NCBI GenBank assembly: GCA_020184695.1
Contig: JAANOX010000149.1
Coordinates: 124,001-188,000, forward strand
Origin: Histomonas meleagridis 2922-C6/04-290x
Taxonomy: Eukaryota; Protista; Parabasalia
DNA length: 64,000 nt
Direction: 5' to 3'
Positions 1 to 60,488 of the stretch are shown here, one piece after another. The position numbers were made by a program, and so were the translations under genes. The notes under the pieces were generated by a model. That model was not told the DNA's origin. It searched no databases and saw only the letters and a list, made by a program, of their open reading frames with translations. The first letter of the stretch is position 1. Every line of letters begins with the position of its first letter.

Positions 1-143
1 GATATAATCGTTTTCATTCATTTCACTTTTTTGCCAATGAAAATGATACAAATTTTCCGGGTGCCCCTGAATCCCATCGAATAATTCAATCCGAAATTCG
101 GTTTTAAGTTATAAATAGCCGGCCACTTAATTTATTTTCAATA

Positions 144-1799
144 ATGTCTGCAGTAGATGAATTGAAAGCGCAAGGAAATGCAGCATTCCAAAAGAAGGAA
201 TACACAAAAGCGATTTCCCTGTACACTGATGCCATTGATATGGACACAGATAATTATACTCTTTATTCAAACAGAAGTGGCGCTTACTGCGCTGCCAAAA
301 AGTATCAACAAGCAGCCGCTGATGCACGAAAAGTTATCTCTCTTAAGCCAGATTGGGTTCGTGGATATACACGTTTAGGCGCAGCTCTTCAAGGTCTTGA
401 AGATTGGGACGGAGCTATTGAAGCGTATCAAAAGGCGTCTGAATTAGACCCCGCAAGCCAAGCAATTAAGGAAGACCTTGCATATGTCCAACAGCAAAAG
501 AATCAAGAAAGCCAAGGCCCACAAGGCGGCTTTGGAATGGACCAACTCTTCTCCCCGCAAATGCTTGAGATGCTTCGAATGAATCCAAAGATCGCCCCAA
601 TGTTTAATGATCCCTCATTCGTCCAAATGATCAACGACCTCAAAGCAAACCCACAGAATGCCTCAAAGTACCAAAACGACCCACGCCTCATGCAGGTCCT
701 CCAGGCGCTCCTCGAGCCGTTCATGAAGAGCCAGCAAGCTGCGCACGATTCAGAGGAACCGCCAGAACCTCCTAAGCCTGCAGAAAAGCCAAAAGTTTAC
801 GAGGAGCCGCCAAAGCCAACAAAAGAGCCTAAGCAAGAAGCAGAGGAAGAGAAGAACCTCGGAAACGCCGAGTTCAAGAAGGGCAATTATGAAGAGGCAT
901 TAGCCCATTATGATGCAGCTATTAAGATTGACCCAACGAATGTCCTATATTACACGAACAAGGCTTCCGTCCTTTCCCGCCAAAAGAAATACCAAGAAGC
1001 TATTGACCTTTGTAATGAGGCTATTAAGATCGGCCGTGAAAATACAGCTCCTTACGAACACATTGCTCGTGCGTACCAAAAGATTTCAACTAACTACGTC
1101 GCTCTTGGTAATCTTGAACAAGGTATCGAGGCATTGAACTCATCATTATTAGAAAAACAAGATCCACAAGTTCGTCGTGAAAAGAAGCGTCTTGAAGATT
1201 TGTTGGCTAAGCGTAAGGCAGCCGAGTATGAAAACCCAGAACTCGCAGAAAAGGCTAAGAATGAAGGTAATGATTTCTTCCGCAAAGGCCAATTCCCAGA
1301 AGCAATTGAACGCTACAGCGAAGCTATTAAGCGCGCGCCACGTAATCCAGCATTATACTCCAACCGTGCTGCGGCATATTCCAAACTTGGTGAAATGCCA
1401 ATGGCAATTAAAGATTGTGAACGCGCCATTGAAATTGATCCAAAGTTTGCAAAGGCATACACACGTAAGGCTTATTGCCATTACGTCATGAAAGATTATA
1501 ACAAAGCACGTGATGCATATAACGAGGCACTTAAGGTTGATCCAAATAACGCAGAAGCTATCGATGGATTACAAAGTATTAACATACAAATCGCTAAGAA
1601 TAGATATACTGCACCAGATGAGGAACAAATTAGAAGATCTATGGCCGATCCAGAAATACAGAAAATATTACAGGATCCTGGCATGCAACAAATTTTGCAG
1701 GAAATACAAAGTAACCCGATGGCTGCCCAGAAGTATATGCAAGATCCTAAGGTAAGAGAAGCTTTCATGAAGTTGCAAACAGCTGGAATTCTTAGATAA
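144..1799 (+). CDS. STI1: Hsp70/Hsp90 organizing protein (STI1/HOP), TPR and DP domains
   Basis: Three TPR clusters (LKAQGNAAF, EKNLGNAEF, AKNEGNDFF; YSNRAAAY) plus two DP-repeat regions (DPRLMQ, MADPEIQKILQDP); 551 aa. Confidence 0.95.
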   Translation: MSAVDELKAQGNAAFQKKEYTKAISLYTDAIDMDTDNYTLYSNRSGAYCAAKKYQQAAADARKVISLKPDWVRGYTRLGAALQGLEDWDGAIEAYQKASELDPASQAIKEDLAYVQQQKNQESQGPQGGFGMDQLFSPQMLEMLRMNPKIAPMFNDPSFVQMINDLKANPQNASKYQNDPRLMQVLQALLEPFMKSQQAAHDSEEPPEPPKPAEKPKVYEEPPKPTKEPKQEAEEEKNLGNAEFKKGNYEEALAHYDAAIKIDPTNVLYYTNKASVLSRQKKYQEAIDLCNEAIKIGRENTAPYEHIARAYQKISTNYVALGNLEQGIEALNSSLLEKQDPQVRREKKRLEDLLAKRKAAEYENPELAEKAKNEGNDFFRKGQFPEAIERYSEAIKRAPRNPALYSNRAAAYSKLGEMPMAIKDCERAIEIDPKFAKAYTRKAYCHYVMKDYNKARDAYNEALKVDPNNAEAIDGLQSINIQIAKNRYTAPDEEQIRRSMADPEIQKILQDPGMQQILQEIQSNPMAAQKYMQDPKVREAFMKLQTAGILR

Positions 1800-2191
1800 A
1801 GAATTCAGTAAAGTATCGAAAAAGTACTTTTGTATTTAAAATAATCGTATTCTTTCGATTTGATGTGAGAGAACGTTTAAGTATTATAGTCTGTTTGTTG
1901 TTGTGTCTTTGAAGTTTTGATTTGATTTGTTAAAACACGTCATATGAATGCAATTACTGATTTTGTTATTTGATTCACTTTGAAATGAATCTGCCCAAAC
2001 TATCATTTTAAATTCCTACACTTAATGTTCTTTTGACACTGAACTCATTAATAGATAAACAATAATTGTTTGCTATAGAGAATGAAATTAAATAAAAGTG
2101 TCGTTTTTGATGTTGGGGTGCCCCAATTGAAGTGAATCAATTGATTGAAAAATTGTGTCAAACTGCTCTGATATCAAAAGTGGCATTTGGA

Positions 2192-4726: not shown

Positions 4727-4884
4727 ATCAAAAATAACATCAAACTTTCTATACTTTACTTAAATCTTCGTTGGGGTGCCCCAATAACCACTTTCATTTA
4801 ACAGTATAAAATCTTTCAGCGTCATATAAAGTTCAGAAAGTTTTATCGTTTCGAAATGAAAATTTAAAGATAATATTTTAGTAA

Positions 4885-6413: not shown

Positions 6414-6841
6414 AAGTGCCGGCCACAAAAATTAAAACAGTTAATTTATTATATATTATGTATAACCTCTAAATATTGCTTGAAAATCTACTTTTGTCTT
6501 ACTTCTAATTAATTTTTTGCTTGTTCCTCTCTTTCTTTCCAATTTTTATGATCGATATCTAATCACATTGAATCTCAAATAAGTCATTAATAATGCTGAA
6601 ATTTATATTTTATATCATATTTTATTACATTAGAATTTTATTTACTAAAAAAAATTTCTTGTAATTTTTATATACAGACTTTTTGCAACTAGGCTCAGCA
6701 AGGGGGTCCCTCAATAACGAAAAATACATTGATTTTTTGCACTTAATTTTTGTTGGACTAATATGACATTTAATATTTTCCCAACAGTTAAAAGTGGACA
6801 ATTTTTGGCATCCAGTGGTCAAATTTTTGTGGCCGGCACTG
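6414..6841. mobile_element. Non-autonomous Tc1/mariner-like MITE (about 428 bp)
   Basis: Perfect 19-bp inverted repeats AGTGCCGGCCACAAAAATT (6415-6433 and 6822-6840). Right end reads CAGTGCCGGCC on the minus strand. TA at 6412-6413 and 6842-6843 is a putative target-site duplication. No transposase ORF. Confidence 0.8.
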
Positions 6842-7292
6842 TAAAAGTAGTTTAAAAAAAAAAGAATAATAAAGATGGAATTATGTAAACATATTTTTGC
6901 ATAATATTTATGTTTAAATAAAATGAGCTAGCTTAGAATGTAACATATTTGTTTTATATCGAATTCTGAAATTAGAAATTTCAAAAAAGAAAATCAAAAT
7001 TAATGCATTTTTTCAGGGTTAAAATGGTTACAATGATAAAATATGTAGAGATAAACATATCTTTATATTTTTTTTTTAAATTTTGATTAAAATTCAAAAT
7101 CGAAAAAATTATTGTGTATAAGTTTGTGACATTGCGCATATTGTTTTGCTATATAAATGATCATTTTGTTCTCAGTTGAATTGTCAAATTGAGATAATTT
7201 GATGATTTTCCTCTCGTTAAGTTCATTACTTTATATTAAACTTTATAATTTCATTAAAAAGAGTACGGAATTTGACTAATGAACCCAATGAT

Positions 7293-7802
7293 ATGCCTTT
7301 ACATACCCGAATTTTTTTTATGATATTCTTCATCTTATGCTTAACACCTTGGATGATCTTTTTCTTTCCTCTTCTCATTGTTTCCAAATTGTTCAATTCA
7401 AATATTCACTGTGTTTGTCCAAATTCAAATAGGTTTCTTCCATGCCCATGTATTGAAGGTAATATGGTGTTGTTTTGCTTGGGAATATTTTATTGTTTTT
7501 CAAAATCTTGGTGTTATTTATCAGGCAATTTCCTTTGTTGTGGAAAGCCATCCTGTTGCAGACACTATACTTTAGATGTACGAGTGAAGAATGTGGATGT
7601 TGCTGCTGTCCTGATCCATCTGAAGAATCCACTGAAATAGCCAATAAACGAAGGTCAAATGGTGCTTCTGCTGTAACTATTCCAACAGATCCAATGAACA
7701 ACTAATCCTTATTTCGATGAAGAACCAGCATATCAAGGATCACAGTACTATCCACAAGTAACTAGTGATATGATGCTTGAAGATAACTTAATACCAAATT
7801 AA
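7293..7802 (+). pseudogene. Cysteine-rich small membrane protein with an apparent compensating pair of frameshifts
   Basis: Hydrophobic segment IFFMIFFILCLTPWMIFFFPLLIV and Cys-rich motifs in the 7272 frame. The protein-like continuation (YFRCTSEECGCCCCPDP) is in the 7475 frame from 7568, then returns to the first frame at 7698 (TTNPYFDEEPAYQGSQYYPQ, stop 7800-7802). Confidence 0.5.
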
Positions 7803-8300
7803 GCATTAACAAAATAGTAAAAGAAATGTATATAAACTTTCACGCGAAAAACCTGTAGACCAACAACAAAATTTTAAGATAAATCATAAATTTTTATATA
7901 GTTTGTTAGCAAATAGAAATTTTAACATATGTTCAGTTACAAAAATGTGAGTTGGTTAAAATATGTAAACTGCAAAAATTAAGAAAAAAAATTGTTGAAT
8001 ATATATATATATATATTGCTATATATGTTTTCTATGAATAATGCTACAGTATATGCGTTGGTTATAAGAAGGTGTCGGTCTACAAGTTTTCACTGCAGTC
8101 TATAGTCAATAATTTGTGCCAATGATAACCTTTCAAATGATTATTGAAAAAAATATATCACATTTTTTAAAAAAAAAGTTTAAAATAATATTTTTTATTT
8201 AACTTCATATATTAAATAACACTTTGATACAAATAAATTTCATAATCAATAAAAATGTTTTAAATTTATGAATTATATTCTTATTGAATTTTAATACACA

Positions 8301-10208
8301 TTAAAGTGATTTTATTTCTTCTTCCATTTTCTCTATTTCCTTTTCATATTTCTTTGCGATCTTAAAGTCGCATAACTTAAGCGAAGGTGTTTGTAATCCA
8401 TTTTCAGTTGTAAATTCCTCATTTGTCAAGTAAACGTTTCTAATTTTTTCGAAACCATTTAAATTATTTTCTTTTGCTTTTTCGTCCAATATTTGCAACA
8501 TTTTTTCCTTTGTTACATTTTTCATGTTATCATTATCCACCACTACAATTGCCACCAAAAATCGACTTTGCATTCCTGCGTGAATATATATTTGGCTTAC
8601 ATATTGAGCAGTTGAATAAATTGCGCGTAACTTACCAAGTGATACATATTCTCCTTGTGACAATTTAACTAATTCTTTACACCTTCCAATCATTTGGAAT
8701 TGTCTTGTTGGCGTTAATTGGAATATATCTCCTGTCTTAAACCACCCTCCATCTGCAAATGCGTTTTTCGTTGATTCTTCATCTTTATAATACCCTTTAA
8801 AGATCGATGTTCCACGTAATAATAATTCGCCTTGTAAATCCTTCGAATAAAAGTTTAATTCGGGTACATCGCGAAGTTTCGCTTCAGTACATTTAAGTAA
8901 TACGCCAACATTACCATTTTGTACATCAGTGCTCTTTTGTACCATTGTACCTGCTGTAGTTTCGGTGAGTCCATAGCCTTGAATGAACGAAACATTAAAT
9001 GCAATTTTAAGATAATTTTGCGTGTCTGTCGATAGTGCAGAGCCTCCACATATTAAAAGTTGGATTTCGCCACCCATTGCATCACGAACTTGTGTAAATG
9101 CTTTGTCTAGAATTGGAACATGTTGAAATCGAAGTTTGTTCGTGATAAATGATTTGATATAAAACGCAGTGTTAAATAAACTTCGAATTAAAAATGGCTT
9201 TTTGGAGATTTGAAGTTGGAGTCCATCCATAACTCGCTCAAATACACGTGAAACACCTATAAATACTGTGGGCTTAAACAATTTGACTTCATCAATTAAA
9301 CGCTTAATACTTCCGGAATAAAAGCCAATGTAACCAAGACATTTGATTCCAACAATATGAATAACAGATTCATAAACATGCGCAAGTGGTAAATATGATA
9401 AAAGTCGATCATCCGATTTAAATGGATATACAAAGGTATAAAAACATGAAGCTGTGGACATAAGATTTGTGTGTGTAAGAATACACCCTTTGGGGTACCC
9501 CGTGGTGCCACTAGTGTACATAATTGTGGCTGGTGAATCAGGTGTTGGTGGTCGCTTTGGAAATCGTTCTGTGGTAGAAAGGGCATCTCGATATTTGGTT
9601 ATTGTGATATTTGGAAATGGTGATTGAATAGTATTTGGTGATGGTGATTCTTCTGCATCAATAATAACAACATTTGTGACAAAAGGAAGATCACCAAGAA
9701 CCTTAACTAAGTCGTTATATTTTGTAGAAATAACAAATATGATTTTGATATGAGCATGATCAATAATATATTTGATATTTTCCCAGCCAAATGTGTCATA
9801 TATTGGAACTGTGACAAAACCATATGCATAACATGCATGTTGAACTGTGATCCACTCAATTCGATTATAACTAAGAATACCAATACAATCGCCCATCTTT
9901 GCACCGTTTTGGATTAGGAATGACCCAATGCTGTCTCGCATTTCTGCTATATCTGTACGAGTATATGGTTTCCATCTATCTTGCCATTGATTATTTTCAA
10001 AAACACGCATTCCATACAAATAATTGTCTGGCGCAATTGATTTTGTATATTCGAAAAGATCGAATATTGTACCAACTTGAGGAAGATCAGGAAATCTTGA
10101 CATGAAATTTTCTGGTGCATAATTATTTGTTTGAGGAGCTCTAATTATAGGAGACTCTCCTGGTAAAGGGTCTTCATTTGAGATTGTGCATGATGTGTCA
10201 GAGCCCAT
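8301..10208 (-). CDS. Long-chain fatty acyl-CoA synthetase (AMP-binding enzyme)
   Basis: IMYTSGTTGYPKG, YLPLAHVYE, QGYGLTET, GWFKTGDI, IGRCKELVKLSQGEYV. Confidence 0.95.
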   Translation of the reverse strand: MGSDTSCTISNEDPLPGESPIIRAPQTNNYAPENFMSRFPDLPQVGTIFDLFEYTKSIAPDNYLYGMRVFENNQWQDRWKPYTRTDIAEMRDSIGSFLIQNGAKMGDCIGILSYNRIEWITVQHACYAYGFVTVPIYDTFGWENIKYIIDHAHIKIIFVISTKYNDLVKVLGDLPFVTNVVIIDAEESPSPNTIQSPFPNITITKYRDALSTTERFPKRPPTPDSPATIMYTSGTTGYPKGCILTHTNLMSTASCFYTFVYPFKSDDRLLSYLPLAHVYESVIHIVGIKCLGYIGFYSGSIKRLIDEVKLFKPTVFIGVSRVFERVMDGLQLQISKKPFLIRSLFNTAFYIKSFITNKLRFQHVPILDKAFTQVRDAMGGEIQLLICGGSALSTDTQNYLKIAFNVSFIQGYGLTETTAGTMVQKSTDVQNGNVGVLLKCTEAKLRDVPELNFYSKDLQGELLLRGTSIFKGYYKDEESTKNAFADGGWFKTGDIFQLTPTRQFQMIGRCKELVKLSQGEYVSLGKLRAIYSTAQYVSQIYIHAGMQSRFLVAIVVVDNDNMKNVTKEKMLQILDEKAKENNLNGFEKIRNVYLTNEEFTTENGLQTPSLKLCDFKIAKKYEKEIEKMEEEIKSL

Positions 10209-19933: not shown

Positions 19934-20641
19934 ACATTTTTTTTAAAGTATAAATTTAGATATTATTGTTTAAAAAGAATTACATTTTTTTCTCGATCAT
20001 TTTGAACTCATGTTTTCATATATAAAATTGGAATTTTCAAATTTAAAAAGAGATCATAAATTTGTGATTATAATTTAATATGAATTTGAATTTTTTTATG
20101 ATGTGATCATTTTATTTGTGGCTTCTTTCCTTTGCTTTTGGTATAGCTTCCAAACGATAGAACCGAATGAATGAAAAATCATCGGATTTATATTCAAAAA
20201 CTGAAGTGTTTGGGAAACCTTTCTGAAACCACTTTAAAGTGGTTTATGTATTGTCTGTGGGAAATTTTGTTTCCCTCATTAATGATTGAAAAATAGTTAT
20301 ACTATAGCAAGCCACTAAGGCTTAGTGACTGAGCATAGTAAATTTTCGATATTGAGCCCCAATAAGAATTCGGAAACGATAGACATTAATAAATAGATTT
20401 AGTGAAATCAGAATTTACTTTTGACCATCCAAATAGTTACATGTCTTAAATTCAATTTCACTTCAATTAAGTTTATATGCATTTTATTTGTATATTGGAA
20501 TGAGAGAAGGTTCAGACAGAATGAATTAATGTATAGACTAACTATCGATGACTTATATAAGTCCCATTATGGGGCACCCCATTTGATCTTCACTAATCAA
20601 CCGAAAAATATTTGTGAGTTTTATTATTAAAGTGGCATATA

Positions 20642-21871
20642 ATGAAAAATCAAAATATTTTGGAATTAGAGCAAAAAATCCAGAAAATAATTTTTGATTT
20701 AGACAAAGACAATATTAGACAAGCAGCAAAAATAATAATTGACAGTTTTGATGATAATTGTTCAATATCTTTTAATATAGTTATTAGTTATTTTATATTT
20801 TTAGCAGTTGTTTTACAAATGAATAAATTTGATATATATTTAAATTTAATGAAAGAAATTGAAAAATACGAAAAAAACGAACCCAAAATATTTGAATATT
20901 TTATTCATACTCTTCTTAAAAATAACATAAAAGAATCACATTATCTTCTTGAAATTATGGTCGAACAAAATCTGATTGATATAAGTCGTCTCTGGAGAAT
21001 TATTAAGATAAAAAAAGAACCATACTTTGTTCAATACATGTCAAAAAAAGATATAAATACATATAAAAATTATGTAAATAATCTCTATCGAAAACAAATC
21101 ATTGAAAATTATGAAGAACTTTCAAAGAATGATTGGGAAGTTCATAAAAAATTAATTAAAGAAGGACATAATCCAAATGAAATTGCGAAAATAATTCGAA
21201 ATGATGAAATTGAAAAACTTCAAGAAATATCATCACAAACAAATTTTGATTTTAATCAAAGAATTGCACCATCACTTTATGAAAGATGTTCATTTATTAA
21301 TGAAGAAAATGTTACATTAATTGATTATGCAGCATTTTTTTCTTCAATTAAATGTTTTAAATATTTACTTATGAATGGTGCAAAAGTAGAAAACACAGGT
21401 GAATATGCAGTTGCAGGAGGAAATGAAGAAATCATTCATTTGTGTGAACAAAATCATTCAACATTTGAAGATGCATATGAAACAGCAATTGAATTTCATC
21501 GAAATGATATCTTTAAATATTTTTATGAGAATAAAATAAAGAAAATTGATAGATTGAAAGAATTAGGAAATGAATGTGTTTTATATAATAATTATGAAAT
21601 TTTTTCATATTTAATAAAAGAAGGAATGAAGATCAATAGAAATATAATTAATACTTCTGCTAAAATTGGCGATTTATATCTTGTTAAATATTTCCTACAA
21701 AACAACAAAATTCCAAAGAATATATTAATTATTTCAGCACAATCAGACAATATTGAACTTGTTAAATATATATTAGAATTAAAAGTAATAGATATAAATG
21801 ATGTTTGTTTATTTTATTTAATATTTATTTTAATAATTTTGGAATTCAAAATAATTTTTGATTTTTATTAA
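20642..21871 (+). CDS. Ankyrin-repeat protein, N-terminal part (trichomonad DUF3447-like domain); frame ends inside the first spacer
   Basis: TLIDYAAFFSSIKCFKYLLMNGA, YAVAGGNEEIIHLC, AIEFHRNDIFKYF, then ankyrin-like helices ending DIND. Confidence 0.85.
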   Translation: MKNQNILELEQKIQKIIFDLDKDNIRQAAKIIIDSFDDNCSISFNIVISYFIFLAVVLQMNKFDIYLNLMKEIEKYEKNEPKIFEYFIHTLLKNNIKESHYLLEIMVEQNLIDISRLWRIIKIKKEPYFVQYMSKKDINTYKNYVNNLYRKQIIENYEELSKNDWEVHKKLIKEGHNPNEIAKIIRNDEIEKLQEISSQTNFDFNQRIAPSLYERCSFINEENVTLIDYAAFFSSIKCFKYLLMNGAKVENTGEYAVAGGNEEIIHLCEQNHSTFEDAYETAIEFHRNDIFKYFYENKIKKIDRLKELGNECVLYNNYEIFSYLIKEGMKINRNIINTSAKIGDLYLVKYFLQNNKIPKNILIISAQSDNIELVKYILELKVIDINDVCLFYLIFILIILEFKIIFDFY

Positions 21872-26019: not shown

Positions 26020-26250
26020 AGTGATCACCTCTCTTTCAAAATTGATTAAAACCGCTACAATAGTTCTTTTGGGGCACCTCAACTATCGTTTTGCAATGTT
26101 CGAGCTCCAAAAACATGTGTCGAAGTAAAAGTTTTGGAATATCAAATCAAGAATCGTTTTACAGAAGTGGAGGAATCAACATTCAAAAAAAATCGTTAAT
26201 CATTATTCATTAAAAAATTGATTGGCCTTCAGAAATTTATTATTCAGATC

Positions 26251-27415: not shown

Positions 27416-30400
27416 TTATTTTTGGATTTCCTTCAATTGCAATTTAGGCTCTTTTTTTGGCCTAAATTCTTTTTCGCTTATCTCTCTTACACCTAATACC
27501 CGTGTGCCATTCACATTATGTACTTTTGGTTTCCATTGCTCATTTCTTTTTGGATCTTCTTTTGGCAATTTTCTCTTTTCGACTTCTTTTACCTCCACCC
27601 GTTTCTTCTTAACTTCTCTTTCACTTTCTGGCGCTCTTTGAATTGGCGTTGCTTTCATTGAAGGTCTTACGAACTTTGGTGGTGGTGGAAGCTTACTTGG
27701 ATCTTTTTGTGATTTAGCCTCATCTAATAACTTCTCCACTCTAACATGTAATTGTTCATCTGTTGGGAAAGGATCAACGCATCTTATTTCTCGCCGTCTT
27801 GGTTCAGTCAAATGTAATGATGAAAGTTCTGAAGAATCACTTGAAATATCAATACTTTGTTCTGCCTTTCTACTTCTCGAAGTTATAATGACTGTTGGTC
27901 TTACGTTCTTTGATTCTGGAGAAACTTTCGCTTGAGTTGGCACATCAACAGTTTTTGTACGTTGCTCTGTGGGGTGCCCCGTGGGGTACCCTGCGAAATC
28001 CCAAGGGAAGTTATTCTGGGTTTGACGTTGTTGTGTAAACTGTGGAAATTGAGAGTATTGCGGTGGGGGTGGTACATATTGCCGATAATGGGGTGGCCCT
28101 TTATCAATCGTGATTAGTCTTAACGGTGTTTGCTTCGGTTCAGGTATTTGTTTATGTTTAATTTTCTTAAGTTTTGGCTTTTGTTTAATTTTCTTTTGTT
28201 TTTGTTTAACTTTTGGCTTTTTAATTCGTATTGGTTCCGGTTCAGGTTCAGGCTCAGGTATATATTCTCCAGAATCAGATTTTTCTTCTTCTTCAATTAA
28301 AGGTAAAGAAACATTTTCTTTGACTTCTTCTTCATGAATTTCTTCTTCTTCTTCGATTCCATCACTAATGTGCACATCGACAGTTGTTTTTAATTCCATT
28401 TTTGGATTTATATCATTTGGCAAATTGAAATCTTCGAAATCGATTAATTCGTTTGGTACAACTTCATCACATTTGAACCCTAAATACGCTCTAATTAATC
28501 CGCATCTGAGCCACGGCACCATATTTGATACAATTGTTGCCAATAATATATTCGAATTCGGAAATTCTTTTTCAATGTTATTACTAATTAAGTTTAATGA
28601 TTCTGTTTCTATTTTAGTTAAAGTTCGTTTTGTGATTTTCGTTGAACATTCGGAGATAAAATCATTAAACAATGGATCATTTTGGAATTTCTTTGAACCA
28701 TTTACATATAAATTATAAACATCTGATGAAAAGTTTGATTCTCCAGTCATTTTAATTTGATGAACTGCATTTTTAATATTAATAAACTCCGGAAATGATA
28801 ATAATCGTAATGTAGCATCATTTGATTTACCTGTTTTAATAGTATTATATATAGCAATGTATCGCCACCGAATAAACCATACAATTCGGAAAAGTTCAAT
28901 GATTTGATTCCGAATTTGTTTTGGAATTTGATTAATTTTATTTGTCATTACGAATCTACAATATTCATATGTAGATATAACAAAGCCAATACCTAAGATA
29001 ATGACAAAATCATTAAATTCTTTTAATGATTTCGGTGGTATTAATTCTAATGTTTCTTCAATGTTTATTAATGTTGAAAGTAATTTCATTTTTGGATTTT
29101 TCGTTGTAGGAATTGAATCAATGATTCGTTGTTTTAATATATTAATTATCGCTTGTAAACAAACCGATCGAATTTCATCAGATTCTTCTGGTGAATAATT
29201 AATGAATTTATACATTGCCATTAAAATTAATTTTAAGTTTTCCGAATGTTCCGATATAATTCGAGTATATAATTGTAATGGTGTTAAAGCTATTGATGAA
29301 TGTTTTAATAATTCTAATGTTAAATCAAATTTCCCATATAACATTAATAACTCTATGATTAATGTTATATCTATATTTATATCATATATTATTGGATCGA
29401 TTTTATTTTTATATAAAATTTTTTTGATTGCTTTCGTTAACATAAAGATATCAATGTTCTTTCCATGATGTGGTTTCTTTAATTCAAGTTGTTCTTCAAT
29501 ATCTTCTTCAGTAGGATTATACATAAATATATTTTTGGTGTTGTTTGTAGTTTTCGTTGGTATATAATCTTTCTTCATTAATTCATCAGTAAATATTTTA
29601 TATAGAATTTGATCTCTTGGATTAGTCGAGATCGAAAGTCGTTTTTGTATGACTTCATATGATGTTACATTTATATCTGTAAGACGTAAGATACATCGAC
29701 AAAATAAAAATGCTAATAAATCTTCATGTGAATTTAATAATTCACTGACAGCTGTATTAAAAACTTCAAATAAATATGATCGTAATGGTGATTGATATGG
29801 AAATATTCGAAATAAATCAGTAATGTATATTAATTTGGCTAATTTAATCGGTGGTAAATACCCATTTTCAGTAATAGAATTTAATGTTTCTGTCCACATT
29901 GGTTCGACTGAACCTTGTGGAAAATGTAATGACATTAAATTTTCAATCGTTTGTGGAACTTTTTCAACATCAATTTTAAGTTCCCGAAATTTATCTTTAG
30001 AATATATTATAAATAATCCAGGATCTACTGAATCAGCACAGACCATTATTATGTTTTCTTTCCCTGGTTGAAATGCTGTTAATGAACATAACGCATGACG
30101 CATGGAAATACCAGATCTTGTAACAGCACTAATTCTCCCATCGAGTGAAGTCACAACAAAAAAGTGCCCGCTACATGACCATGCAATACTTGAAACGATT
30201 GGTGAATTTCCTGGGAAAATTTCTTTTAATGGAATTTTTGAGACAACTCTTAAGAATCTTGTGACTATTAATAATGTTTGTGAAACTGCAATTACTGCTA
30301 ATCGACAATCTCTAGACCACCAAATACATGGTGATCCTGACCCTTCAATTACTGATAATTTTGTATCAGCTCGTTGAAAATTTTGTGCAGTACCATTAAG

Positions 30401-31231: not shown

Positions 31232-31479
31232 CAACAAATCACAAAACGAATAATAAACGTTATCAAAAGGGGTGCCCTGAAATGCATATTCATGATTAAA
31301 ATGAGGGTAAATAATTTACGACTAAGTAATTAATTTATATCTTTAATGTTGACATTAAATAAGATACAGATATTGAAATTTTTATTACATCAGGTTTGTA
31401 ATAAATTGAAAAGAAATTATATGTTTTAATTATATAATTATACATTTAAAATTACAATTGCCATTTCTTTAATATTAAA

Positions 31480-32366: not shown

Positions 32367-34544
32367 ATGGTTCAAGTGTTGTTCTTCATTATACAAATTG
32401 CTCATTCAGAAAATATCGATAACAAAATTCAACTTCGTGTGAGTTATGATGGATCTCGGGCAATATTAAACTGGACTGGTTTCCATCAAACTCAAAATGT
32501 ATATTATACAGTATATTCATCTATTGACAATGGAATTAATTGGCTTCCTGTAAGTTCATTTGATTATAACACAACACAAGAGGTTAAAGTTCTTAATGTT
32601 TATCCTGTTGGAAGTGCTGGAATTACTATTCCTCGAGTAACATTCTATTTTAAAGATGGTTCTACTCTTACAACAGAGAGGTCAGCTTCTTTAAAAGTTT
32701 GGATGGAAGGTGGTTATTACGATTATGAAGGACATTTTTCTTTTGATGCATATGGTCTTAATCCTTATACAAAAGAACAAATTATTAAAGTTACACCGAA
32801 AACAACAGCAGATTTTGAAAAAATCTTGTTAGACGAGATGCGTAATTATGATGTAATAGTTTTTGGCACATGGGATGCTAACGGACGTGAATATCTCAGT
32901 GATGAAGCAGTTGAACGTGTTAAGGAATATATTAATCTTGGCTATGGAGTTCTTATTGGACATGATGTCATAGGATCTGAATTTGGGAATGAAGTAGGAC
33001 TTGGTCGAATTGCGGATATGTTTGGAATTAAGCTTGGAACACGACAATGTCAATGGCTTCCAAAATGTTCTGATGGTACCATTGATCAACATTGGGGTCA
33101 TTGGTCACAAGAAGTTTTAGTTCTAAAGAGGGGACTCTTGACACAATTTCCACATACAATTTATCAATCAAATCTTTTAACTATTCTACTAACACATACA
33201 TGTGATAATGCAGCATTTGGTGATGTATGGCTGGAATTAGGCACAACCAAAGAAGGTGATGTACCAGATAACTTTGATGTTGGAAGTTTTGAAGAAGTAG
33301 AAAACTATGCATGGAGCCTTTCGGGTTATTCTGATATTCGATATGGAAATCCGCATTATTATTTGACAACATATCGAAACACAGCAATGATTCAAATGGG
33401 TCATAGTGATGCTTCTTCGACAGAAGATGAACGAAAAGTTTTAGCGAATACTATTTATTATTTATATCAACGAACATCAAATCAATATTCATATGATTAT
33501 TCATTTGAAGATCGAACAGCACCAACTAAACCGACCATTACACAACCAGACATAAGTGAAAGAACAGTTCAACTTTCATCCGAAGATCCGAAAGATATTT
33601 ATTTATATCGCGTTGAAGGACAAACATATAATGGTGATGAAAAATTTACATCAGATATAGTATCACTTGAATATCCAACAGGAATCAAAGAATATTATTA
33701 TATCATTGATAATAATCAAAGCACAGAAATTACAATCGATATGGAAAGTGAATTTAGCAAAACGACGACTGGAATTATTGAAGATATTATCAATGAAGAT
33801 GTATATATTCATGCAGTAGCTATTGACATTTCAGGTAAAATGAGTGAAACATCTCATTTTTATCTTGAGAAAACACCCGATCCAACAAACACATTCTCAC
33901 AATCAAATACGTATTCACAGAGTAATACATTTAGTCAATCAAATACATTTACACAATCAAATACATTTACACAATCAAATACATTTACACAATCAAATAC
34001 ATTTACACAATCAAATACATTCAAACAATCAAATACATTCGTACAGAGTAATGTATTTGTGCAATCAGATACATATACTGCAGATGTATCCATTACGAAT
34101 ACTTTGATTTTTTCGATTTCTTATTCGATGTCATTAAGTGCTTATCAAAGGTCAATTGAAGTTTCATATATAACGTCACACATTGGCGCAAGTATAATTT
34201 TCATTAAGACAGAATTTATTATCTATGATTATTCGATGATATTATTTTCTTCTTATTATAGTTTTTATATAACAACAAATTTTTATACATATAATAATTC
34301 AGATGAAATTAATGGGAAAGAACAAATTTCAAAAGGCGCATTAATAGCAATTGTTTGTTCAGCAGTAGCAATTGCATTAATTATCATTGGAATTGTTATA
34401 TTTTTAATTCGTAATAAACAAATGAAAGAAAAAACAAAATCAACAACATCAAATAAAACAGAACAAAATATGAATGAAAAATATATTCACATTGATGAAA
34501 ATGTTCAAAACTTAGCAAGCAATGATAATGATCAATGGTTATAA
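32367..34544 (+). CDS. Type I membrane surface protein with a bacterial-like extracellular domain and SNTFTQ repeats
   Basis: Signal-like N-terminus; VLNVYP, VIVFGTWDANG, GVLIGHD, TAMIQMGHS, ERKVLANTIYY; hexapeptide repeats; TM helix ALIAIVCSAVAIALIIIGIVIFLI; tail NDNDQWL. Confidence 0.85.
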   Translation: MVQVLFFIIQIAHSENIDNKIQLRVSYDGSRAILNWTGFHQTQNVYYTVYSSIDNGINWLPVSSFDYNTTQEVKVLNVYPVGSAGITIPRVTFYFKDGSTLTTERSASLKVWMEGGYYDYEGHFSFDAYGLNPYTKEQIIKVTPKTTADFEKILLDEMRNYDVIVFGTWDANGREYLSDEAVERVKEYINLGYGVLIGHDVIGSEFGNEVGLGRIADMFGIKLGTRQCQWLPKCSDGTIDQHWGHWSQEVLVLKRGLLTQFPHTIYQSNLLTILLTHTCDNAAFGDVWLELGTTKEGDVPDNFDVGSFEEVENYAWSLSGYSDIRYGNPHYYLTTYRNTAMIQMGHSDASSTEDERKVLANTIYYLYQRTSNQYSYDYSFEDRTAPTKPTITQPDISERTVQLSSEDPKDIYLYRVEGQTYNGDEKFTSDIVSLEYPTGIKEYYYIIDNNQSTEITIDMESEFSKTTTGIIEDIINEDVYIHAVAIDISGKMSETSHFYLEKTPDPTNTFSQSNTYSQSNTFSQSNTFTQSNTFTQSNTFTQSNTFTQSNTFKQSNTFVQSNVFVQSDTYTADVSITNTLIFSISYSMSLSAYQRSIEVSYITSHIGASIIFIKTEFIIYDYSMILFSSYYSFYITTNFYTYNNSDEINGKEQISKGALIAIVCSAVAIALIIIGIVIFLIRNKQMKEKTKSTTSNKTEQNMNEKYIHIDENVQNLASNDNDQWL
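33885..34080 (+). repeat. Coding 18-bp tandem repeat (SNTFTQ, about 11 units)
   Basis: Four perfect CAATCAAATACATTTACA copies at 33936-34007, flanked by variants. Confidence 0.9.
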
Positions 34545-34892
34545 TTTTCAAATGTTTTATAATAATAAAAATTTATCATTTTATTATTTTTCATTGTTCA
34601 GAGACAACTTTAACATTTTGTTAAATCTCATGTTCTGAGAACAAATAAAACAAATTTCGATGGTTATAATAAATTTAAATTATATTGTTTTTATCAATAA
34701 TAAAAAAATTTAGTTTATTTTGATTTGATGAAAAAGTTTTTGTTTACGAAAAATACGTTAAGTCATATCACATAACTTTGTAAAAACTACGGTTTTGTAC
34801 TGATTTCTTTCCGGTGATTAACGGTTAACGAAGAAATTTCTGAACATTTCTATAGTTTACATACCATTTGAGCGGTACATATCAATTTTCTG

Positions 34893-35837
34893 ATGCCACT
34901 TTATGTGCCATGCCCTGTAAATAAGCCAGAATACCACAATCAGAAAGAATTAGCTGATGTTAGTGATGAAGAATTCCATGAAATCTTCCAACCAAAAAAA
35001 CCTAATACTTTTTCAAAGATATATCGTGCGATCACTTTTGTCTTATTTTTAGGGCCTATTAGATTGGTTTTGACAGTTCTATTCACTGTCCTTTACTTTT
35101 TATTCACAGCTCTACTTTCACATACAGAAAGATTCTTTGATTCAAAACAAAAATTCAGGAATTTTGTCTTTAAGACAGCACACCCATTTCAACGCATTGC
35201 AATGTTCTTTGCAGGTGTGGTCAAAGTCAATATCAATGGTAAAATCGATCCCAGAACACGATCTTTAATAACAAATCATTTATCACTTTTTGATGCGCCC
35301 ATGATATGTTCCATCCATCCTTTATGCTTTGTATTAATGGAATCTTTGAGAAGCGTTTGGCTTTTAAGGAAGTTTGGAGATGTTTATGGATTCATATATG
35401 TTGATCGATCAGTCAAATGTAACACAACGGAAAAAATTATTAACACTCAGAATGATCCAGAGTCACCTCCACTTCAAGTTTTCCCAGAAGGCAAAGTTAC
35501 CAATGGAGATTGCATAATGGGATTCAGAACAGGAGCATTCGTGAATGACACCGTTATACAGCCAGTTACAATGAGGTACAACCAGTACTTGATAAGAGAG
35601 GACATGGCAACTGTTTCTTGGTTGGAAGATAGTATTTTAACATACTTATATCAATACTTTTCGATCCCATTTATGACCCTCAACATCAATATATTAGATC
35701 CAATAGACTTCAAAGGTTCAAAGAAAACGCCACAAGAAAGAGCAGCTGAGGTTCAACTGATTATGGCAAATTCACTTGGTTGCAAAGCAATCAAAAGAAC
35801 GAACAAAGAAATATTCCAAAAACCAAAAGCTGAATAA
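34893..35837 (+). CDS. Lysophospholipid acyltransferase (PlsC/LPCAT family)
   Basis: NHLSLFD (HX4D), FIYVDRS, VFPEGKVTN, FRTGAF, IQPVTMRY. Confidence 0.92.
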   Translation: MPLYVPCPVNKPEYHNQKELADVSDEEFHEIFQPKKPNTFSKIYRAITFVLFLGPIRLVLTVLFTVLYFLFTALLSHTERFFDSKQKFRNFVFKTAHPFQRIAMFFAGVVKVNINGKIDPRTRSLITNHLSLFDAPMICSIHPLCFVLMESLRSVWLLRKFGDVYGFIYVDRSVKCNTTEKIINTQNDPESPPLQVFPEGKVTNGDCIMGFRTGAFVNDTVIQPVTMRYNQYLIREDMATVSWLEDSILTYLYQYFSIPFMTLNINILDPIDFKGSKKTPQERAAEVQLIMANSLGCKAIKRTNKEIFQKPKAE

Positions 35838-36065
35838 AAATTTTCATGTTTTTGATTTTGAAGAAATTTCATTTGTAATTATGTTTAAGAATAAAAATCT
35901 GATCTGAGTGTTATTGCATAACAAAGTTTGATTTTCCAGATCTAGATTTTGAATTTGAAGATATGATTAAAACAAAAAATGAGCACAAACAACCAGGGGC
36001 CCGTTTTTGTAAAAGGGAAAGGTTTATTAATATGAATAAAAACATTTAATCTGTCTTGATTAATT

Positions 36066-47949: not shown

Positions 47950-47980
47950 AAAAAAATTAGATATATATAAACATAACAAT

Positions 47981-49525
47981 TTATGAACCATGAACTATCA
48001 TTTCACGATTAATTTTGTGCATTTCTTCTTCCAGAATTTTTTTATTTTGCGGAATATCATCCGATAACTCTGAATAGATGTGATAAACGTTCTCTTTGAT
48101 GTCCAACGGGGCACCCCGGTCGACGATAGATTTCAATTGAGGGAAAACTTTTTCATTGATGAAGTTGCAGCCAAAAGTTTTCGACATTGCTAAAATTGCT
48201 GACGATGATAAACATCGTGTGTGAAGACATGGATCTGATAACTTCCCGGCAATTTTATCAACAAATTGTAATACAACTTGATGTAAGTTTTGATATTCAA
48301 GGAATTTCTCGATAATCTCAATCGCAGTTCCTATATTTCTCCAATTGTTCGTCTTGAACTTGTTATTAATCCACTTAACAATTACATTTATGTCGTTCTT
48401 AGTGAGCAGATTATTTACATATGGAACAAGACAACTTAAGCAAGCATCAATGACAGAACTTTGATCTTTGGACTTAAGAACTTGAATAAAACGTACAAAT
48501 TTGCTCGGATCAGCAGCTCCACTTTCGAATAATTTTGGCAATAAACTAAGTGCTGAAACAATTATAATGTCATTTTGTTGTTTAAGAGCACTCTCAACTA
48601 AGCGAATAAACATTTCGTCTTTTGGAGAAATTTCAGGTAAAATCTCATTTGCCTTTTCAAATGACATTGCGCGAATAAAACCCATATTATCCTTCAAAAA
48701 TGAGAGAAAACATGGAATAAATTCGGGAAAAGAAGTAATGAACGGTCCAATATTTTGAAGAAAAGCAAAACGAACTTTCCATGATGAATCTTTTGACATT
48801 GCAAGGAAAGGTCGTGGATCACTAATAAGTTGTGGGTAATTGGACGCTACTAACAAAGAATGTGTTCGGATACGTGCATCTTTGTCAGTGACAGATGGAA
48901 CAATAATTTTGTTAAATAATTCTTGTTTGTTTTCACTGTAATCAACAATGCCAGAGAATGAATCTATGATAGAAATTTTTAGAATGATGACTTTTGTGTT
49001 GTATAATTGTATATAATGTTGTATAAGAAAATCAAGATTTTTGGCTGAAAGCTTTGGTGCAAGTTTTATAGTGAATGGTAAAATGATCGAAAGAGAATCT
49101 TCACATTCACTATCAAAAAGTAGAGAGAAATATGGAAAGAACTTTGTTTGAATAAATTTATCGCTACACATTTCCAAAAAAGAATCACTAAATTCCATAA
49201 TTTCTTTTGCTATTGAACTCCCGCCTTCTTGCATTATTTTTCTTAAGAGAATTAGAAAAGATGTTAATACTAATTCATCGACTCCTTTGAAAACAAGACA
49301 ATTTAGATTTCTAAGGAGAACCCTTGTCGAAAATATGTCGCCGAAATCACAACATTGCAAAAGAAAACCAATAAGTTGTATTCTATTGGAAGATGTATAA
49401 TTTTTTGTAATCTCTGGCAAGTTGTAAAACAGTGTAATACATGCATCTGGGTTACGTGCAATAATGTCCTGAATAAGCATGTGCTGTTGATTCATTTGCA
49501 AGTTTTCCAAAACTTGCGTGGACAT
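47981..49525 (-). CDS. HEAT-repeat protein, PP2A scaffold (A subunit)-like
   Basis: DKDARIRTH, KDSSWKVRFAF, KDNMGFIRAMS, NNWRNIG, SDPCLHTR; first ATG at 49525. Confidence 0.8.
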   Translation of the reverse strand: MSTQVLENLQMNQQHMLIQDIIARNPDACITLFYNLPEITKNYTSSNRIQLIGFLLQCCDFGDIFSTRVLLRNLNCLVFKGVDELVLTSFLILLRKIMQEGGSSIAKEIMEFSDSFLEMCSDKFIQTKFFPYFSLLFDSECEDSLSIILPFTIKLAPKLSAKNLDFLIQHYIQLYNTKVIILKISIIDSFSGIVDYSENKQELFNKIIVPSVTDKDARIRTHSLLVASNYPQLISDPRPFLAMSKDSSWKVRFAFLQNIGPFITSFPEFIPCFLSFLKDNMGFIRAMSFEKANEILPEISPKDEMFIRLVESALKQQNDIIIVSALSLLPKLFESGAADPSKFVRFIQVLKSKDQSSVIDACLSCLVPYVNNLLTKNDINVIVKWINNKFKTNNWRNIGTAIEIIEKFLEYQNLHQVVLQFVDKIAGKLSDPCLHTRCLSSSAILAMSKTFGCNFINEKVFPQLKSIVDRGAPLDIKENVYHIYSELSDDIPQNKKILEEEMHKINREMIVHGS

Positions 49526-53890: not shown

Positions 53891-54743
53891 TGCAGTGTGA
53901 TGCAAGTGTGAACTTCATCTTGAAATTGAATGAACATCAAAAATTGAAAAGTTTATTCATGCACTTTTTTATAACCAAAGCTAAACCAAAAAATGTAAAG
54001 AATTTACAATTTTTTTTTAGTAATAACTGATAACTAAGGCTTGCATTTTAATATAAAATTCACAAACTGTATTCAATTTACTGTTTTAAAGGAATAACAA
54101 TCTTTTTCATTAATATCATTCTCTTTTTCTCTAATAGTATTTGAACTATATCTATATTTTTATAGTTTTCAGATATAAAAAAATGAAACGAACCACATAT
54201 TGTCTTACTTTGAACAGATTCAAATTTGATATTTTTAGTGATTTCAATTTTTTGAAAATTTTAGGAATTTGATAAGAAATACATTAAGTTCAACTACTGC
54301 TATTAAAGTTCTTATATCAAATTCTGAAAAATAGGTGTCTGCTTGCAAAAAGTTATTCAAAAAATTCGAAAAATTTGTAACGTTTTGGGCCGCCCCGTTC
54401 TTTGCAACATTTGAAGAAACAACCCAATTAAATTATTGTCACTTTTTATTTGCTAACAATAAAAAATAAGAAAAATCAACCAAAAAACATTTTTAATGAA
54501 AATAATAATAAACTCAATCTGAAGATCGAAGGAGTTAGTATATATTTGAGAATATTAGGACTAAAAGAAATCGTAGGAGAGAATTTTGCTTATAACTATA
54601 TTTGTGTTATATAATCTTCTCTTGAATTTGTGCCAAAACATAGAGACATAATATCACTTTTAATGAGAAGTAAATCAAATCACTGACCAAATATCTATTC
54701 AAAATAAATGTAAAGTTAAGAAATTTCATATCGGCAACCAAAA

Positions 54744-57823: not shown

Positions 57824-57847
57824 TCGAATAGTTTCGCCCGTTTTGCA

Positions 57848-58813
57848 ATGGTGGAAATGAATCAAAACGAAACAATACCAGAAAGCGTTCTAAAATACAT
57901 ACGAACAAGATCAAATCGGAACGAATCATCTCGGTTTCCTCATAAGCTTTGGACTTTATTAAATTGGTCAGATAAAAATCAAAAACGTGGAGAACTTTGT
58001 GGATGTGGCTGGATAACAGACACTGAATTTTTTATCAAAAAGAGTAAACTCTGCGAAGTTCTCGAAATCAAAATTAATACTCTTAATGTCAATTTAAAAA
58101 CATTAGGATTTCATCCAACACGTTCTCGAACGGGAGATATCACATATTGGGAAAACAATGGATTTTCTAAGACCTCTTGTCCGCAAGACTTCGAACGTAT
58201 TCGCAATAGTCGTTGCAAGCCACTTGCTTTGAAAAATCTTTTAACATCTGCAGTTTATCTTCCACTTCTTGAACAACTCCAACTATTTATGATGGATCAG
58301 CCTTCCATTAATCTTTTTAAGAAGGAAGTTGTTCAAGTTTGGGAATCATTAGTTGGTCCCAAACTTATATTTGCAGTCGAACTCAATGACTTCCAAAAAG
58401 CATTGGTTGGGCGCTTTGAGAAGCTCGGCTTTTACCCTAGCAAATCATTATTTCCCCAAGTCCTCTCACCAAAACTTCCGAATGTAATTGACATTTTTGA
58501 CTTTGCGGTTTTTTTAGCTCGCTTTGGCCCATTTGAGCATGCCGTGATTAAGTTGTTCCAGTACCAAACAGTTCTAAATGAGATACGACCCGATTTTTTT
58601 ATGTTTAATACGCCATCGTTGACAAGTTATTTTTCGATGACATTTCACAACTGCTTTCGATTTCAGTTGGCACAGACGGGTGAATATCACTGCTATAACT
58701 TGCCAACGGTGAGTTCGACTTCCGGGTTTTTGGCTGATGAGGATGGCGCTATTTATCAATCTTGGAAATTAATGCTGCAACAAAATTATTTCCTGGCAAC
58801 ACAAAATGTATAA
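57848..58813 (+). CDS. IBP39-like initiator-binding protein (IBD winged helix plus C-domain)
   Basis: SRFPHKLWTLL, GCGWITDTEFFIKK, IKINTLNVNLKTLGF resemble the T. vaginalis IBP39 initiator-binding domain. Confidence 0.85.
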   Translation: MVEMNQNETIPESVLKYIRTRSNRNESSRFPHKLWTLLNWSDKNQKRGELCGCGWITDTEFFIKKSKLCEVLEIKINTLNVNLKTLGFHPTRSRTGDITYWENNGFSKTSCPQDFERIRNSRCKPLALKNLLTSAVYLPLLEQLQLFMMDQPSINLFKKEVVQVWESLVGPKLIFAVELNDFQKALVGRFEKLGFYPSKSLFPQVLSPKLPNVIDIFDFAVFLARFGPFEHAVIKLFQYQTVLNEIRPDFFMFNTPSLTSYFSMTFHNCFRFQLAQTGEYHCYNLPTVSSTSGFLADEDGAIYQSWKLMLQQNYFLATQNV

Positions 58814-59429
58814 ACTTGTTTGTTTTTTGCGATTTTTTTGTTTCATTTTAATGTTTTAAATAAATTGAGTTACAATTTTAATAATATGAACTAATTCATT
58901 TGGTTGTTGTGGAATAATATGGAATAATATTAATGAAATAAATTAATTTGTATTGCAAAAGCTTGTGCACTTTTTCGTAAAGTTGTTTTTAACGGTCATC
59001 TGGGGGTACCCCAACATCTTGCTTTTTTTTAAAACCCAAAAAATTATGGATAATGATATCACACAAGATCAAACAACAACTGCAACAAATTATTTAGAAA
59101 AGGAAAGTGAAAATGTTTCTCTGGAATCACTTCTTTCGCTTGAACATATAATATTTAATTAAATTAAGAACTGAAGAAAATCTTAATTCATCAATAACAA
59201 CAAACGCTAAAATTATTTGACACAAATTTCCCTCATTCATTTAATATTAATATAAGTAAATTAATTTATTTAGCTTTTGCATCACGAAATAACAAAAGTT
59301 CTGTTTATATTAATTTCATCTAATTAGCAAAATGATTGATCTAAATTTAGTTCATGAAGATCTTTTCTTTAAAAGGTGAGGTTTGAGTATTTGACATGAT
59401 TTTTTTTTATTGAATTCATTTTGGCATTA

Positions 59430-60488
59430 ATGATTGGTGGATGGGGAAAAGTTCCAAGTCAAGGAGCTTTCCAACAATCAGCCTCTCAAAAAACTTATCC
59501 TTGGATCCAAAACAAAGAAACTCATCATGATGATTTTATTTTAAAACTTCATACTGAGATACATGATTTTGCAAATTGGATTTCACCCACACCACAGGAA
59601 AAACATGCAAGATTATTAGTAGCCTATAAGCTCAGAATGTTAATATCTAGTCTGTGGCCAGATGCAAAAGTTTTATCGATTGGCTCAAGCGCTACTTTTA
59701 CAAACCTTCCAGATGGAGACATCGACATTTCTGTTCACAACGCACCAAATTACGGTTATATTCTGGAAGAATTGAATAATTATTTATCGTCTTGCAACTT
59801 TTTCATAGAATCGGAGGTTATTCCAGCGAGGTGCCCCATTATAAAAGGGGTAGAAAAACAATTTAAATTCAAAATCGATATTTCTGTGAATAATGAAAAT
59901 GGAGTCCTTAACATTAAGAGGACGAGAAGTTATTTTACAAAATATCCAACATTAGTTCCAACATTAATGGTTCTCAAATATTACATTTGCATGTATCATT
60001 TGGATGAGCCTTATACAGGTGGAATAAGCACAAATACACTTGTGCAAATGGTTATATTTTCTATTCAATCTACAAATGAAAAGGATCAATGGAATTGCGG
60101 AAATGTTATACTAAATTTTTTTGAAATATTTGGAAGAACATTTAATTATGTTACAACTGGTTTCTCGACACGTGAAGGGGGACGTACTTTCAGTAAAGTC
60201 AACAGATTTCTAATGAATTGGGAATCACCATTTACATTATGTGTTGAAGATCCTCAAGCTCCAGGAAACTTTCTTGGTGAAAATGCTCTTCAAGCTATTA
60301 ATCTCAGAAAAATATTTGACAAAGCTTATCAATCTCTTAAATTTAGAACCCAACAAAAAGATGAATCACTTCTTGGCAAAATCATTAACCCAAGCTCTCC
60401 TTTCTTTTCACAAATGGAATCAAGGAGAAATGAAATTAACAATTTGTACCATCGTTTTGTTGGGATAGAATCCGTTAAACTAACATAA
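59430..60488 (+). CDS. Non-canonical poly(A) polymerase, TRF4/PAP2 family
   Basis: GSSATFTNLPDGDIDI (GS plus DxD), ARCPIIK, KIDIS, EPYTGGIST, LCVEDPQAPGN; first ATG at 59430. Confidence 0.92.
   Translation: MIGGWGKVPSQGAFQQSASQKTYPWIQNKETHHDDFILKLHTEIHDFANWISPTPQEKHARLLVAYKLRMLISSLWPDAKVLSIGSSATFTNLPDGDIDISVHNAPNYGYILEELNNYLSSCNFFIESEVIPARCPIIKGVEKQFKFKIDISVNNENGVLNIKRTRSYFTKYPTLVPTLMVLKYYICMYHLDEPYTGGISTNTLVQMVIFSIQSTNEKDQWNCGNVILNFFEIFGRTFNYVTTGFSTREGGRTFSKVNRFLMNWESPFTLCVEDPQAPGNFLGENALQAINLRKIFDKAYQSLKFRTQQKDESLLGKIINPSSPFFSQMESRRNEINNLYHRFVGIESVKLT

Follow-up and report, generated by a model that had tools for sequence, protein, structure and literature searches.

GGGGYRCCCC, an over-represented 10-bp word of Histomonas meleagridis DNA that is most likely a promoter-proximal factor-binding site

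Introduction

Why should a GC-rich word of ten base pairs, GGGGYRCCCC, recur in the AT-rich DNA of the parabasalid Histomonas meleagridis? The question is raised by one stretch of 64,000 nucleotides (contig JAANOX010000149.1 of assembly GCA_020184695.1, positions 124,001 to 188,000; hereafter the window), in which a reading made from the sequence alone had noted the word and had proposed either a binding site for a dimeric DNA-binding protein or a eukaryotic analogue of HIP1, an iterated palindrome of cyanobacteria. Here we describe GGGGYRCCCC as a real, sharply defined and previously unreported cis-element of H. meleagridis, which is most likely a new promoter-proximal factor-binding site. 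The surprise is a set of copies that lie in coding DNA and are made of rare codons, and these allow for a less ordinary explanation.

Nearly all that is known of transcriptional control in parabasalids comes from Trichomonas vaginalis, namely from the initiator (Inr) with its binding protein IBP39, the M3 element with M3BP, and Myb sites. H. meleagridis is an untreatable poultry pathogen, and the motif offers a direct handle on its transcription: an element of 10 bp present in about one promoter in ten can serve directly as bait for its factor, for delimiting a regulon and in the construction of expression tools.

Results

A sharply defined word far above chance

The window contains seven perfect copies of GGGGYRCCCC, against 0.02 expected from dinucleotide shuffles and 0.003-0.013 expected from Markov models of order 1-4. 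With up to one mismatch allowed there are 14 copies, against 0.13 expected from the shuffles, and neither count was reached in any of 100 shuffled sequences. The strong over-representation claimed by the sequence-only reading therefore holds, under the shuffles as well as under the Markov models. All seven perfect copies and six of the one-mismatch copies lie exactly where that reading had placed them; its list lacked a seventh one-mismatch copy, GGGCCGCCCC at 54387, and its estimate of about 0.14 each for G and C has to be replaced by the measured 0.15 each (GC content 30%). Copies with exactly two mismatches number five, which is at chance (about four are expected for all matches with two mismatches or fewer). 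Because such copies show no excess, the word is sharply defined.

The window corresponds to approximately 148,824-212,823 of the 383-kb contig WSYJ01000156.1 (assembly GCA_020186115.1), which its STI1 protein matches exactly and which is part of the H. meleagridis genome of Palmieri et al. 2021 (PMC8529796). We extended the count to a further 95 kb of H. meleagridis DNA, comprising 10 kb to the left of the window (L004) and loci from four other contigs (L005, L006, L008 and L009). Perfect copies are absent from these loci, but one-mismatch copies number four where about 0.2 would be expected (P 5e-5). Each of the four is intergenic, and three of them precede annotated ATGs, by 7, 36 and 55 nt. 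In the total of 159 kb there are thus 18 copies with at most one mismatch, about one per 9 kb and unevenly spread, and the seven perfect copies are confined to the window (with an even rate, P 0.0017). The window is therefore an extreme sample whose densities overstate the genome-wide rate, but the motif itself is genome-wide, and its frequency in this AT-rich genome is hundreds of times that expected by chance. Under an order-3 Markov model, no 8-mers of the 159 kb are more over-represented than its sub-words GGGTGCCC and GGTGCCCC (z 17.6 and 15.6), which rank above the M3-like words CGACCGTT and AACGGTCG.

Contigs derived from RNA in a separate, independent 2023 study reproduce the copies at 2115 and 4773 without a single differing letter. 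These two copies are therefore not artefacts of assembly or consensus calling, a concern that had been raised together with the original observation.

The motif accounts for seven of the 24 CCCC runs and seven of the 36 GGGG runs in the window. Its G and C runs are separated by exactly 2 nt throughout, and the inverted arrangement, CCCC-NN-GGGG, occurs once. Beyond a weak preference for T at -1 and A at +1 the flanks have no sequence in common, and their GC content of 0.31 is at background; the copies are thus isolated 10-bp GC islands and not copies of a repeat. The centre is TG or CA in 14 of the 18 copies (54% expected from dinucleotide frequencies; P 0.03) and TA in three. Since most centres are TG or CA, the motif usually falls short of a strict palindrome, and its preferred form is T-GGGG-TG/CA-CCCC-A. 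The extended palindromes reported earlier are real, TTGGGGTGCCCCAA occurring twice, on either side of the beta-adaptin gene, and ATGGGGCACCCCAT once. Two candidate origins of the sequence pattern were set aside: no halo of GC-biased conversion surrounds the copies, and CpG deamination as the source of the TG, CA and TA centres is not supported by an observed-to-expected CpG ratio of 0.93.

Concentration upstream of start codons

To place the copies relative to genes, we used the first ATGs of long open reading frames (ORFs) in the window and annotated models at the other loci, and measured distances from the near edge of the motif. Half of the 159 kb (50%) is coding, and 4.4% lies within 110 nt upstream of an adjacent gene's ATG. 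This 4.4% holds eight of the 18 copies (P 3.9e-7), a roughly 10-fold concentration. The motif is carried by the promoters of five of 32 genes in the window and three of 37 elsewhere, or about 8-16% of promoters, and the five distances of 38-86 nt given by the sequence-only reading were all correct (Table 1). Relative to the gene, the TG or CA at the centre reads in either direction. Five one-mismatch promoter copies are unambiguous, and in each of them it is the gene-distal G run that carries the mismatch (P 0.03), a bias that is suggestive only.

For STI1 the position could be related to a transcription start site (TSS). A SMART-cDNA contig, which carries the template-switch oligo and so marks the 5' end, begins at 134, and this places the STI1 copy at -76 to -67. 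Poly(A) tails in the RNA contigs map to 1826 for STI1 and 4744 for beta-adaptin.

The copy at 59003 also looks like part of a promoter, lying 5 nt downstream of an M3-like AACGGTC and 44 nt before an ATG. That ATG opens an ORF of 37 codons without annotation (window 59047-59160), situated between an IBP39-like and a poly(A)-polymerase-like gene and preceded, in order, by the M3-like word, GGGGTACCCC and an Inr-like CCAAA; it may represent a small gene, or else a 5' exon that was modelled wrongly. A search for hidden small RNA genes after 4773 or 59003 with Rfam and ARAGORN gave only a tRNA-Gly, at 14037.

Relation to known parabasalid promoter elements

The sequence-only reading had held that the motif is none of the trichomonad core elements Inr, M3 and M5. 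This is borne out: GGGGYRCCCC matches none of the published Inr, M3, M5 and MRE consensus sequences (PMC9203502), and an M3-like word was detected as a separate element of this DNA. This word, CGACCGTT/AACGGTCG, fits the trichomonad M3 consensus given in PMC9203502, [AGT][AG]C[GC]G[TC]T[TAG]. Nine of its 17 occurrences in the 159 kb are located 14-86 nt upstream of ATGs, and a few are in coding DNA or at 3' ends. The distribution of the M3-like words resembles that of GGGGYRCCCC and thereby calibrates our use of position. Because the M3-like word is strongly over-represented and lies so close upstream of start codons, the M3 promoter element of T. vaginalis appears to be shared with Histomonas. 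An IBP39-type initiator-binding protein, a mark of trichomonads, is encoded in the window.

GGGGYRCCCC is not reported in the T. vaginalis papers on ATAC-seq or N6-methyladenine (6mA), in the Tritrichomonas foetus promoter paper, or in the H. meleagridis genome paper (PMC8529796), the last of which mentions no promoter or DNA-level motif. Searches of the literature on trichomonad and Histomonas promoter motifs yielded nothing resembling it and no cis-element for H. meleagridis; when GGGGTACCCC, GGGGTGCCCC and GGGGCACCCC were looked for in full texts, cloning primers and sequences without relation to the motif were the only hits.

Table 1. Copies of GGGGYRCCCC and M3-like words in H. meleagridis DNA (window coordinates unless a locus is named)
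Position	Element	Location	Remarks
58..67	one-mismatch copy CGGGTGCCCC	86 nt upstream of STI1/HOP ATG (144)	-76 to -67 from cDNA 5' end (134)
2115..2124	perfect copy in TTGGGGTGCCCCAA	77 nt upstream of beta-adaptin ATG (2192)	
4773..4782	perfect copy in TTGGGGTGCCCCAA	convergent intergenic region, 29 nt beyond beta-adaptin poly(A) site (4744)	no nearby promoter
9492..9501	perfect copy	coding, AMP-binding enzyme (minus gene 8301-10208)	ACG GGG TAC CCC = G-Y-P of TSGTTGYPKG signature
20571..20580	perfect copy in ATGGGGCACCCCAT	71 nt upstream of ankyrin/DUF3447 ATG (20642)	
26071..26080	one-mismatch copy, gene-oriented GAGGTGCCCC	62 nt upstream of succinyl-CoA synthetase beta (SCS-beta) ATG (26009, minus)	
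27971..27992	perfect copy and adjoining one-mismatch copy (27983)	coding, 1273-codon ORF (minus)	GGG TAC CCC ACG GGG CAC CCC = GYPTGHP
28090..28099	one-mismatch copy GGGGTGGCCC	coding, 1273-codon ORF	K-G-P-P-H
31269..31278	one-mismatch copy, gene-oriented AGGGCACCCC	38 nt upstream of ATG at 31231 (minus)	
48108..48117	perfect copy	coding, HEAT-repeat ORF (minus), 127 nt before stop, convergent junction	CGG GGT GCC CCG (R-G-A-P)
54387..54396	one-mismatch copy GGGCCGCCCC	between divergent genes, nearest ATG 350 nt away	may be chance
59003-59012 (element 58987..59012)	perfect copy GGGGTACCCC	44 nt upstream of ATG of 37-codon ORF	M3-like AACGGTC (58991-58997) 5 nt upstream
59828..59837	one-mismatch copy GAGGTGCCCC	coding, poly(A)-polymerase-like gene	A-R-C-P
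L006 3185	one-mismatch copy	7 nt upstream of ATG of RNase H2 subunit C	
L006 14975	one-mismatch copy	36 and 103 nt upstream of ATGs	divergent pyrophosphatase / UBA-SEP pair
L008 5442	one-mismatch copy	55 nt upstream of HMG-box gene ATG	
19639, 19652, 16035, 63389, 58991; L006 9130, 7539; L009 1207, 12807	M3-like CGACCGTT/AACGGTCG		

Relatives and neighbouring sequences

For other parabasalids, 57 kb of DNA was covered (21.6 kb from T. foetus, 22.5 kb from L013, the rest from L001, L002, L011 and L012), and it is free of copies with at most one mismatch. Were the overall Histomonas rate to apply, an empty sample of this size would have a probability of 0.0016; with the rate found outside the window the probability is 0.09, and the power of the comparison is then low. 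A metagenome scan supplied two parabasalid loci only. On this thin evidence the motif looks lineage-specific or fast-evolving.

Other blocks of the two promoters compared between species are conserved. Just upstream of the STI1/HOP transcription start, TATAAATAGCCGGCCACTTAA is shared by four taxa, H. meleagridis, two metagenomic relatives and T. foetus (window 111-131; L001 ~505-525; L002 ~1160-1180; L003 ~9965-9985), and may be a gene-specific, possibly stress-related, promoter element; GCCGGCCAC is also present at window 6418 and 6829. In the beta-adaptin promoter the proximal block TCAAACTGC.CT...AAAAGTG.CATTT..AATG is conserved between window 2156-2191 and L011 75-110, unlike GGGGTGCCCC further upstream, which L011 lacks.

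At L008, TTGAGTCAGAT recurs at least seven times, 54-165 nt apart (L008 7265-7820), within a gene for 478 amino acids (6429-7865). The repetition indicates a tandem-repeat protein, and it inflates the count of the AP-1-like word TGAGTCAG. The attenuated-strain contig JAANOX010000099.1 diverges from the virulent-strain sequence after 13,960 (L007 13960-18808, the contig end), where it matches inverted, ~76%-identical copies of nearby sequence. This end is probably misassembled, and the strain comparison was therefore unusable. Within the window, the ankyrin/DUF3447 ORF (20642-21871) is uncalled in the deposited models, the continuous 1273-codon ORF (27416-31237) is deposited as a gene of 747 amino acids with introns, and two ORFs at 32367-35858 are fused into one acyltransferase of 805 amino acids. 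A ribosomal protein S23 gene lies at 26272-26706 (minus).

Discussion

A binding site for a dimeric factor

We lean, with moderate confidence, towards reading GGGGYRCCCC as a lineage-specific, cis-acting protein-binding site of H. meleagridis that is recognized by a dimeric factor. G-rich half-sites that are used in either orientation, tens of base pairs upstream of transcription starts, in some 8-16% of promoters, point to such a factor, and we infer from this pattern that a protein binds the motif, that it does so as a dimer, and that its binding affects transcription. The half-sites GGGGY and RCCCC, of 5 bp each, would be read by a homodimeric, sequence-specific protein sitting about 25-75 bp upstream of the transcription starts of roughly one promoter in ten, where its role would be that of an upstream activator or of a general regulatory factor maintaining open chromatin. 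Thus, of the two interpretations offered by the sequence-only reading, the dimeric binding site gains from the sharpness of the word, its indifference to orientation and its promoter concentration, while the HIP1 analogue has the rare-codon coding copies as its one support and fails on density, positional neutrality and strict palindromy.

Several observations weigh against a binding site that serves promoters. One is that six copies lie in coding DNA (9492, 27971, 27983, 28090, 48108 and 59828; three perfect, three with one mismatch). They encode G-Y-P, G-H-P, R-G-A-P and the like through the rare codons GGG and CCC, which make up 11% of Gly and 7% of Pro codons, respectively. When synonymous codons were shuffled 2000 times within each of 24 ORFs, 0.0115 perfect copies and 0.31 copies with at most one mismatch were expected, against three and six observed, and no shuffle reached these counts (P<1/2000). 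Such coding enrichment is not predicted by a pure promoter element. The copies use at least two reading frames, and the word at 9492 overlies the conserved AMP-binding signature TSGTTGYPKG, so it was made by codon choice and not by insertion. Some 43 kb of coding DNA outside the window contains no copy, which makes the genome-wide coding rate uncertain; three perfect coding copies in one window nevertheless remain improbable even after correction for ~680 windows. If this coding enrichment proves to be genome-wide, it implies selection at the DNA level, or a mutational drive, beyond promoter function.

A second difficulty is the copy at 4773, which has a convergent 3' end on either side, lies past the stop codon of the convergent kinase gene (4885) by ~100 nt, and has no ORF, tRNA or Rfam RNA gene downstream. 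The 14-mer that contains it, TTGGGGTGCCCCAA, is the one found in the beta-adaptin promoter, so that a single word brackets this gene. Both this copy and those in coding DNA are left over by the binding-site reading. The comparison with relatives also goes the other way: at the aligned position, the STI1 promoter of the metagenomic relative L001 (92% protein identity) reads GGGGCGGTTC, and the beta-adaptin promoter of L011 (84% protein identity) has no motif. The word is therefore missing from both orthologous promoters compared, although blocks beside it are conserved; these relatives are distant at silent sites. Finally, a single TSS is mapped, that of STI1, the deposited gene models are imperfect, and no protein is known to bind GGGGYRCCCC.

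Chromatin boundaries

One variant of the binding-site reading deals better with the gene ends. A boundary or roadblock factor of the Reb1, Abf1, Rap1 or CTCF type might bind at every occurrence of the 10-mer and there separate closely packed transcription units, position nucleosomes or mark further chromosomal functions, for instance origins, with promoter activation being secondary. It would account for the identical words that bracket beta-adaptin (one 77 nt ahead of the ATG, the other 29 nt past the poly(A) site), for the placement of the copies at 4773 and 48108 at convergent 3'-3' junctions, and for tandem gene pairs that carry the motif between the 3' end of the upstream gene and the next promoter; the very high specificity and the presence in about one promoter in ten would also be reminiscent of general regulatory factor sites in yeast. 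However, only two of about eight convergent junctions in the window have the motif, and most copies have the downstream ATG much nearer, at 40-85 nt, than the upstream stop codon, at 190-320 nt. A roadblock within coding DNA (9492, 27971, 59828) would, moreover, hinder transcription of its host gene, and the mid-gene copies stay unaccounted for. We consider a primary role of this kind rather unlikely.

Mutation, repair and genome maintenance

The coding copies are what a HIP1-like process would explain. Here the word would accumulate throughout the genome, genes included, and without selection of individual sites, because mutation or repair is biased by an enzyme that reads GGYRCC, either a DNA methyltransferase or a mismatch-specific nuclease. 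In keeping with this, the coding copies go against the codon usage of their own genes through synonymous choice, in two or more frames, and the core does contain BanI and KpnI-type sites, as the sequence-only reading had observed of the former. Every centre except the doubtful one at 54387 includes at least one A:T pair, a possible target for 6mA, a modification present in T. vaginalis (bioRxiv 10.1101/603894). Yet the density is low and uneven, far from one copy per kb, and perfect copies are absent from the 95 kb outside the window. The word is not indifferent to coding status or gene position; its 10-fold concentration near promoters is unexpected from a neutral bias, and the absence of coding copies from some 43 kb of coding DNA beyond the window adds to the difficulty. 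Nor do the usually non-palindromic TG/CA centres, the lack of a GC halo or the undepleted CpG speak for such a process, which we judge improbable.

A broader version would make GGGGYRCCCC the eukaryotic counterpart of bacterial iterated palindromes: a genome-maintenance system that reads or creates the word, either site-specific methylation coupled to repair or a chromosome-organising protein, would keep it in promoters, at gene ends and within coding sequence and override codon usage, the promoter bias being secondary. The protein could have been acquired or invented in the Histomonas lineage. We give this proposal the same small chance.

Mobile elements, chance and artefact

That the copies mark a mobile element, either as excision footprints of an element with GGGGY...RCCCC termini or as core sites of a tyrosine recombinase, is very improbable and largely refuted. 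Palindromic footprints are typical of hairpin-forming transposases, but the flanks show neither common sequence nor target-site duplication, no mobile element adjoins any copy, and the coding copies, being in frame and at conserved residues such as those of the AMP-binding signature, cannot be insertions. Chance, composition or faulty assembly would fit the extreme character of the window, but with unmatched shuffles, a repeated excess at other loci, identical RNA-derived contigs and a coding count that survives correction their likelihood is negligible; we reject them together with the mobile element.

Comparison with known systems

Sites of Reb1, Abf1 and Rap1 in yeast are highly specific, occupy ~10% of promoters just upstream of the TSS in either orientation, and occasionally occur at 3' ends. 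By analogy, GGGGYRCCCC would resemble them in specificity, in its share of promoters, in its indifference to orientation and in its occasional copies at 3' ends. The yeast sites differ in being depleted from coding DNA, where copies of GGGGYRCCCC are enriched, and no factor homologous to theirs is known for GGGGYRCCCC.

In cyanobacteria the highly iterated palindrome HIP1 (GCGATCGC) occurs about once per kb. It is likewise a GC-rich palindromic word with a core of the restriction-modification type, present in coding DNA through codon choice. GGGGYRCCCC, in contrast, is ~10-fold rarer, concentrated at promoters, usually non-palindromic at its centre, eukaryotic, and without a known cognate methyltransferase.

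A third likeness is to the kappaB consensus, GGGRNNYYCC, which is bound by Rel/NF-kappaB dimers. Every copy of GGGGYRCCCC with intact G and C runs fits this consensus, and both have G-rich half-sites of 5 bp. We know of no Rel-homology protein in Parabasalia, and the resemblance may serve as a lead for the mode of recognition only.

Closest in organism are the trichomonad elements Inr, M3, M5 and MRE-1/2, which are read by IBP39 and Myb-type factors. GGGGYRCCCC differs from them in being GC-rich, 10 bp long and two-fold symmetric, in its unrelated sequence, and in lying further upstream than Inr. It shares with them the character of a short, over-represented word within ~100 nt upstream of start codons, and in H. 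meleagridis itself the M3-like word comes close to it in both abundance and distribution.

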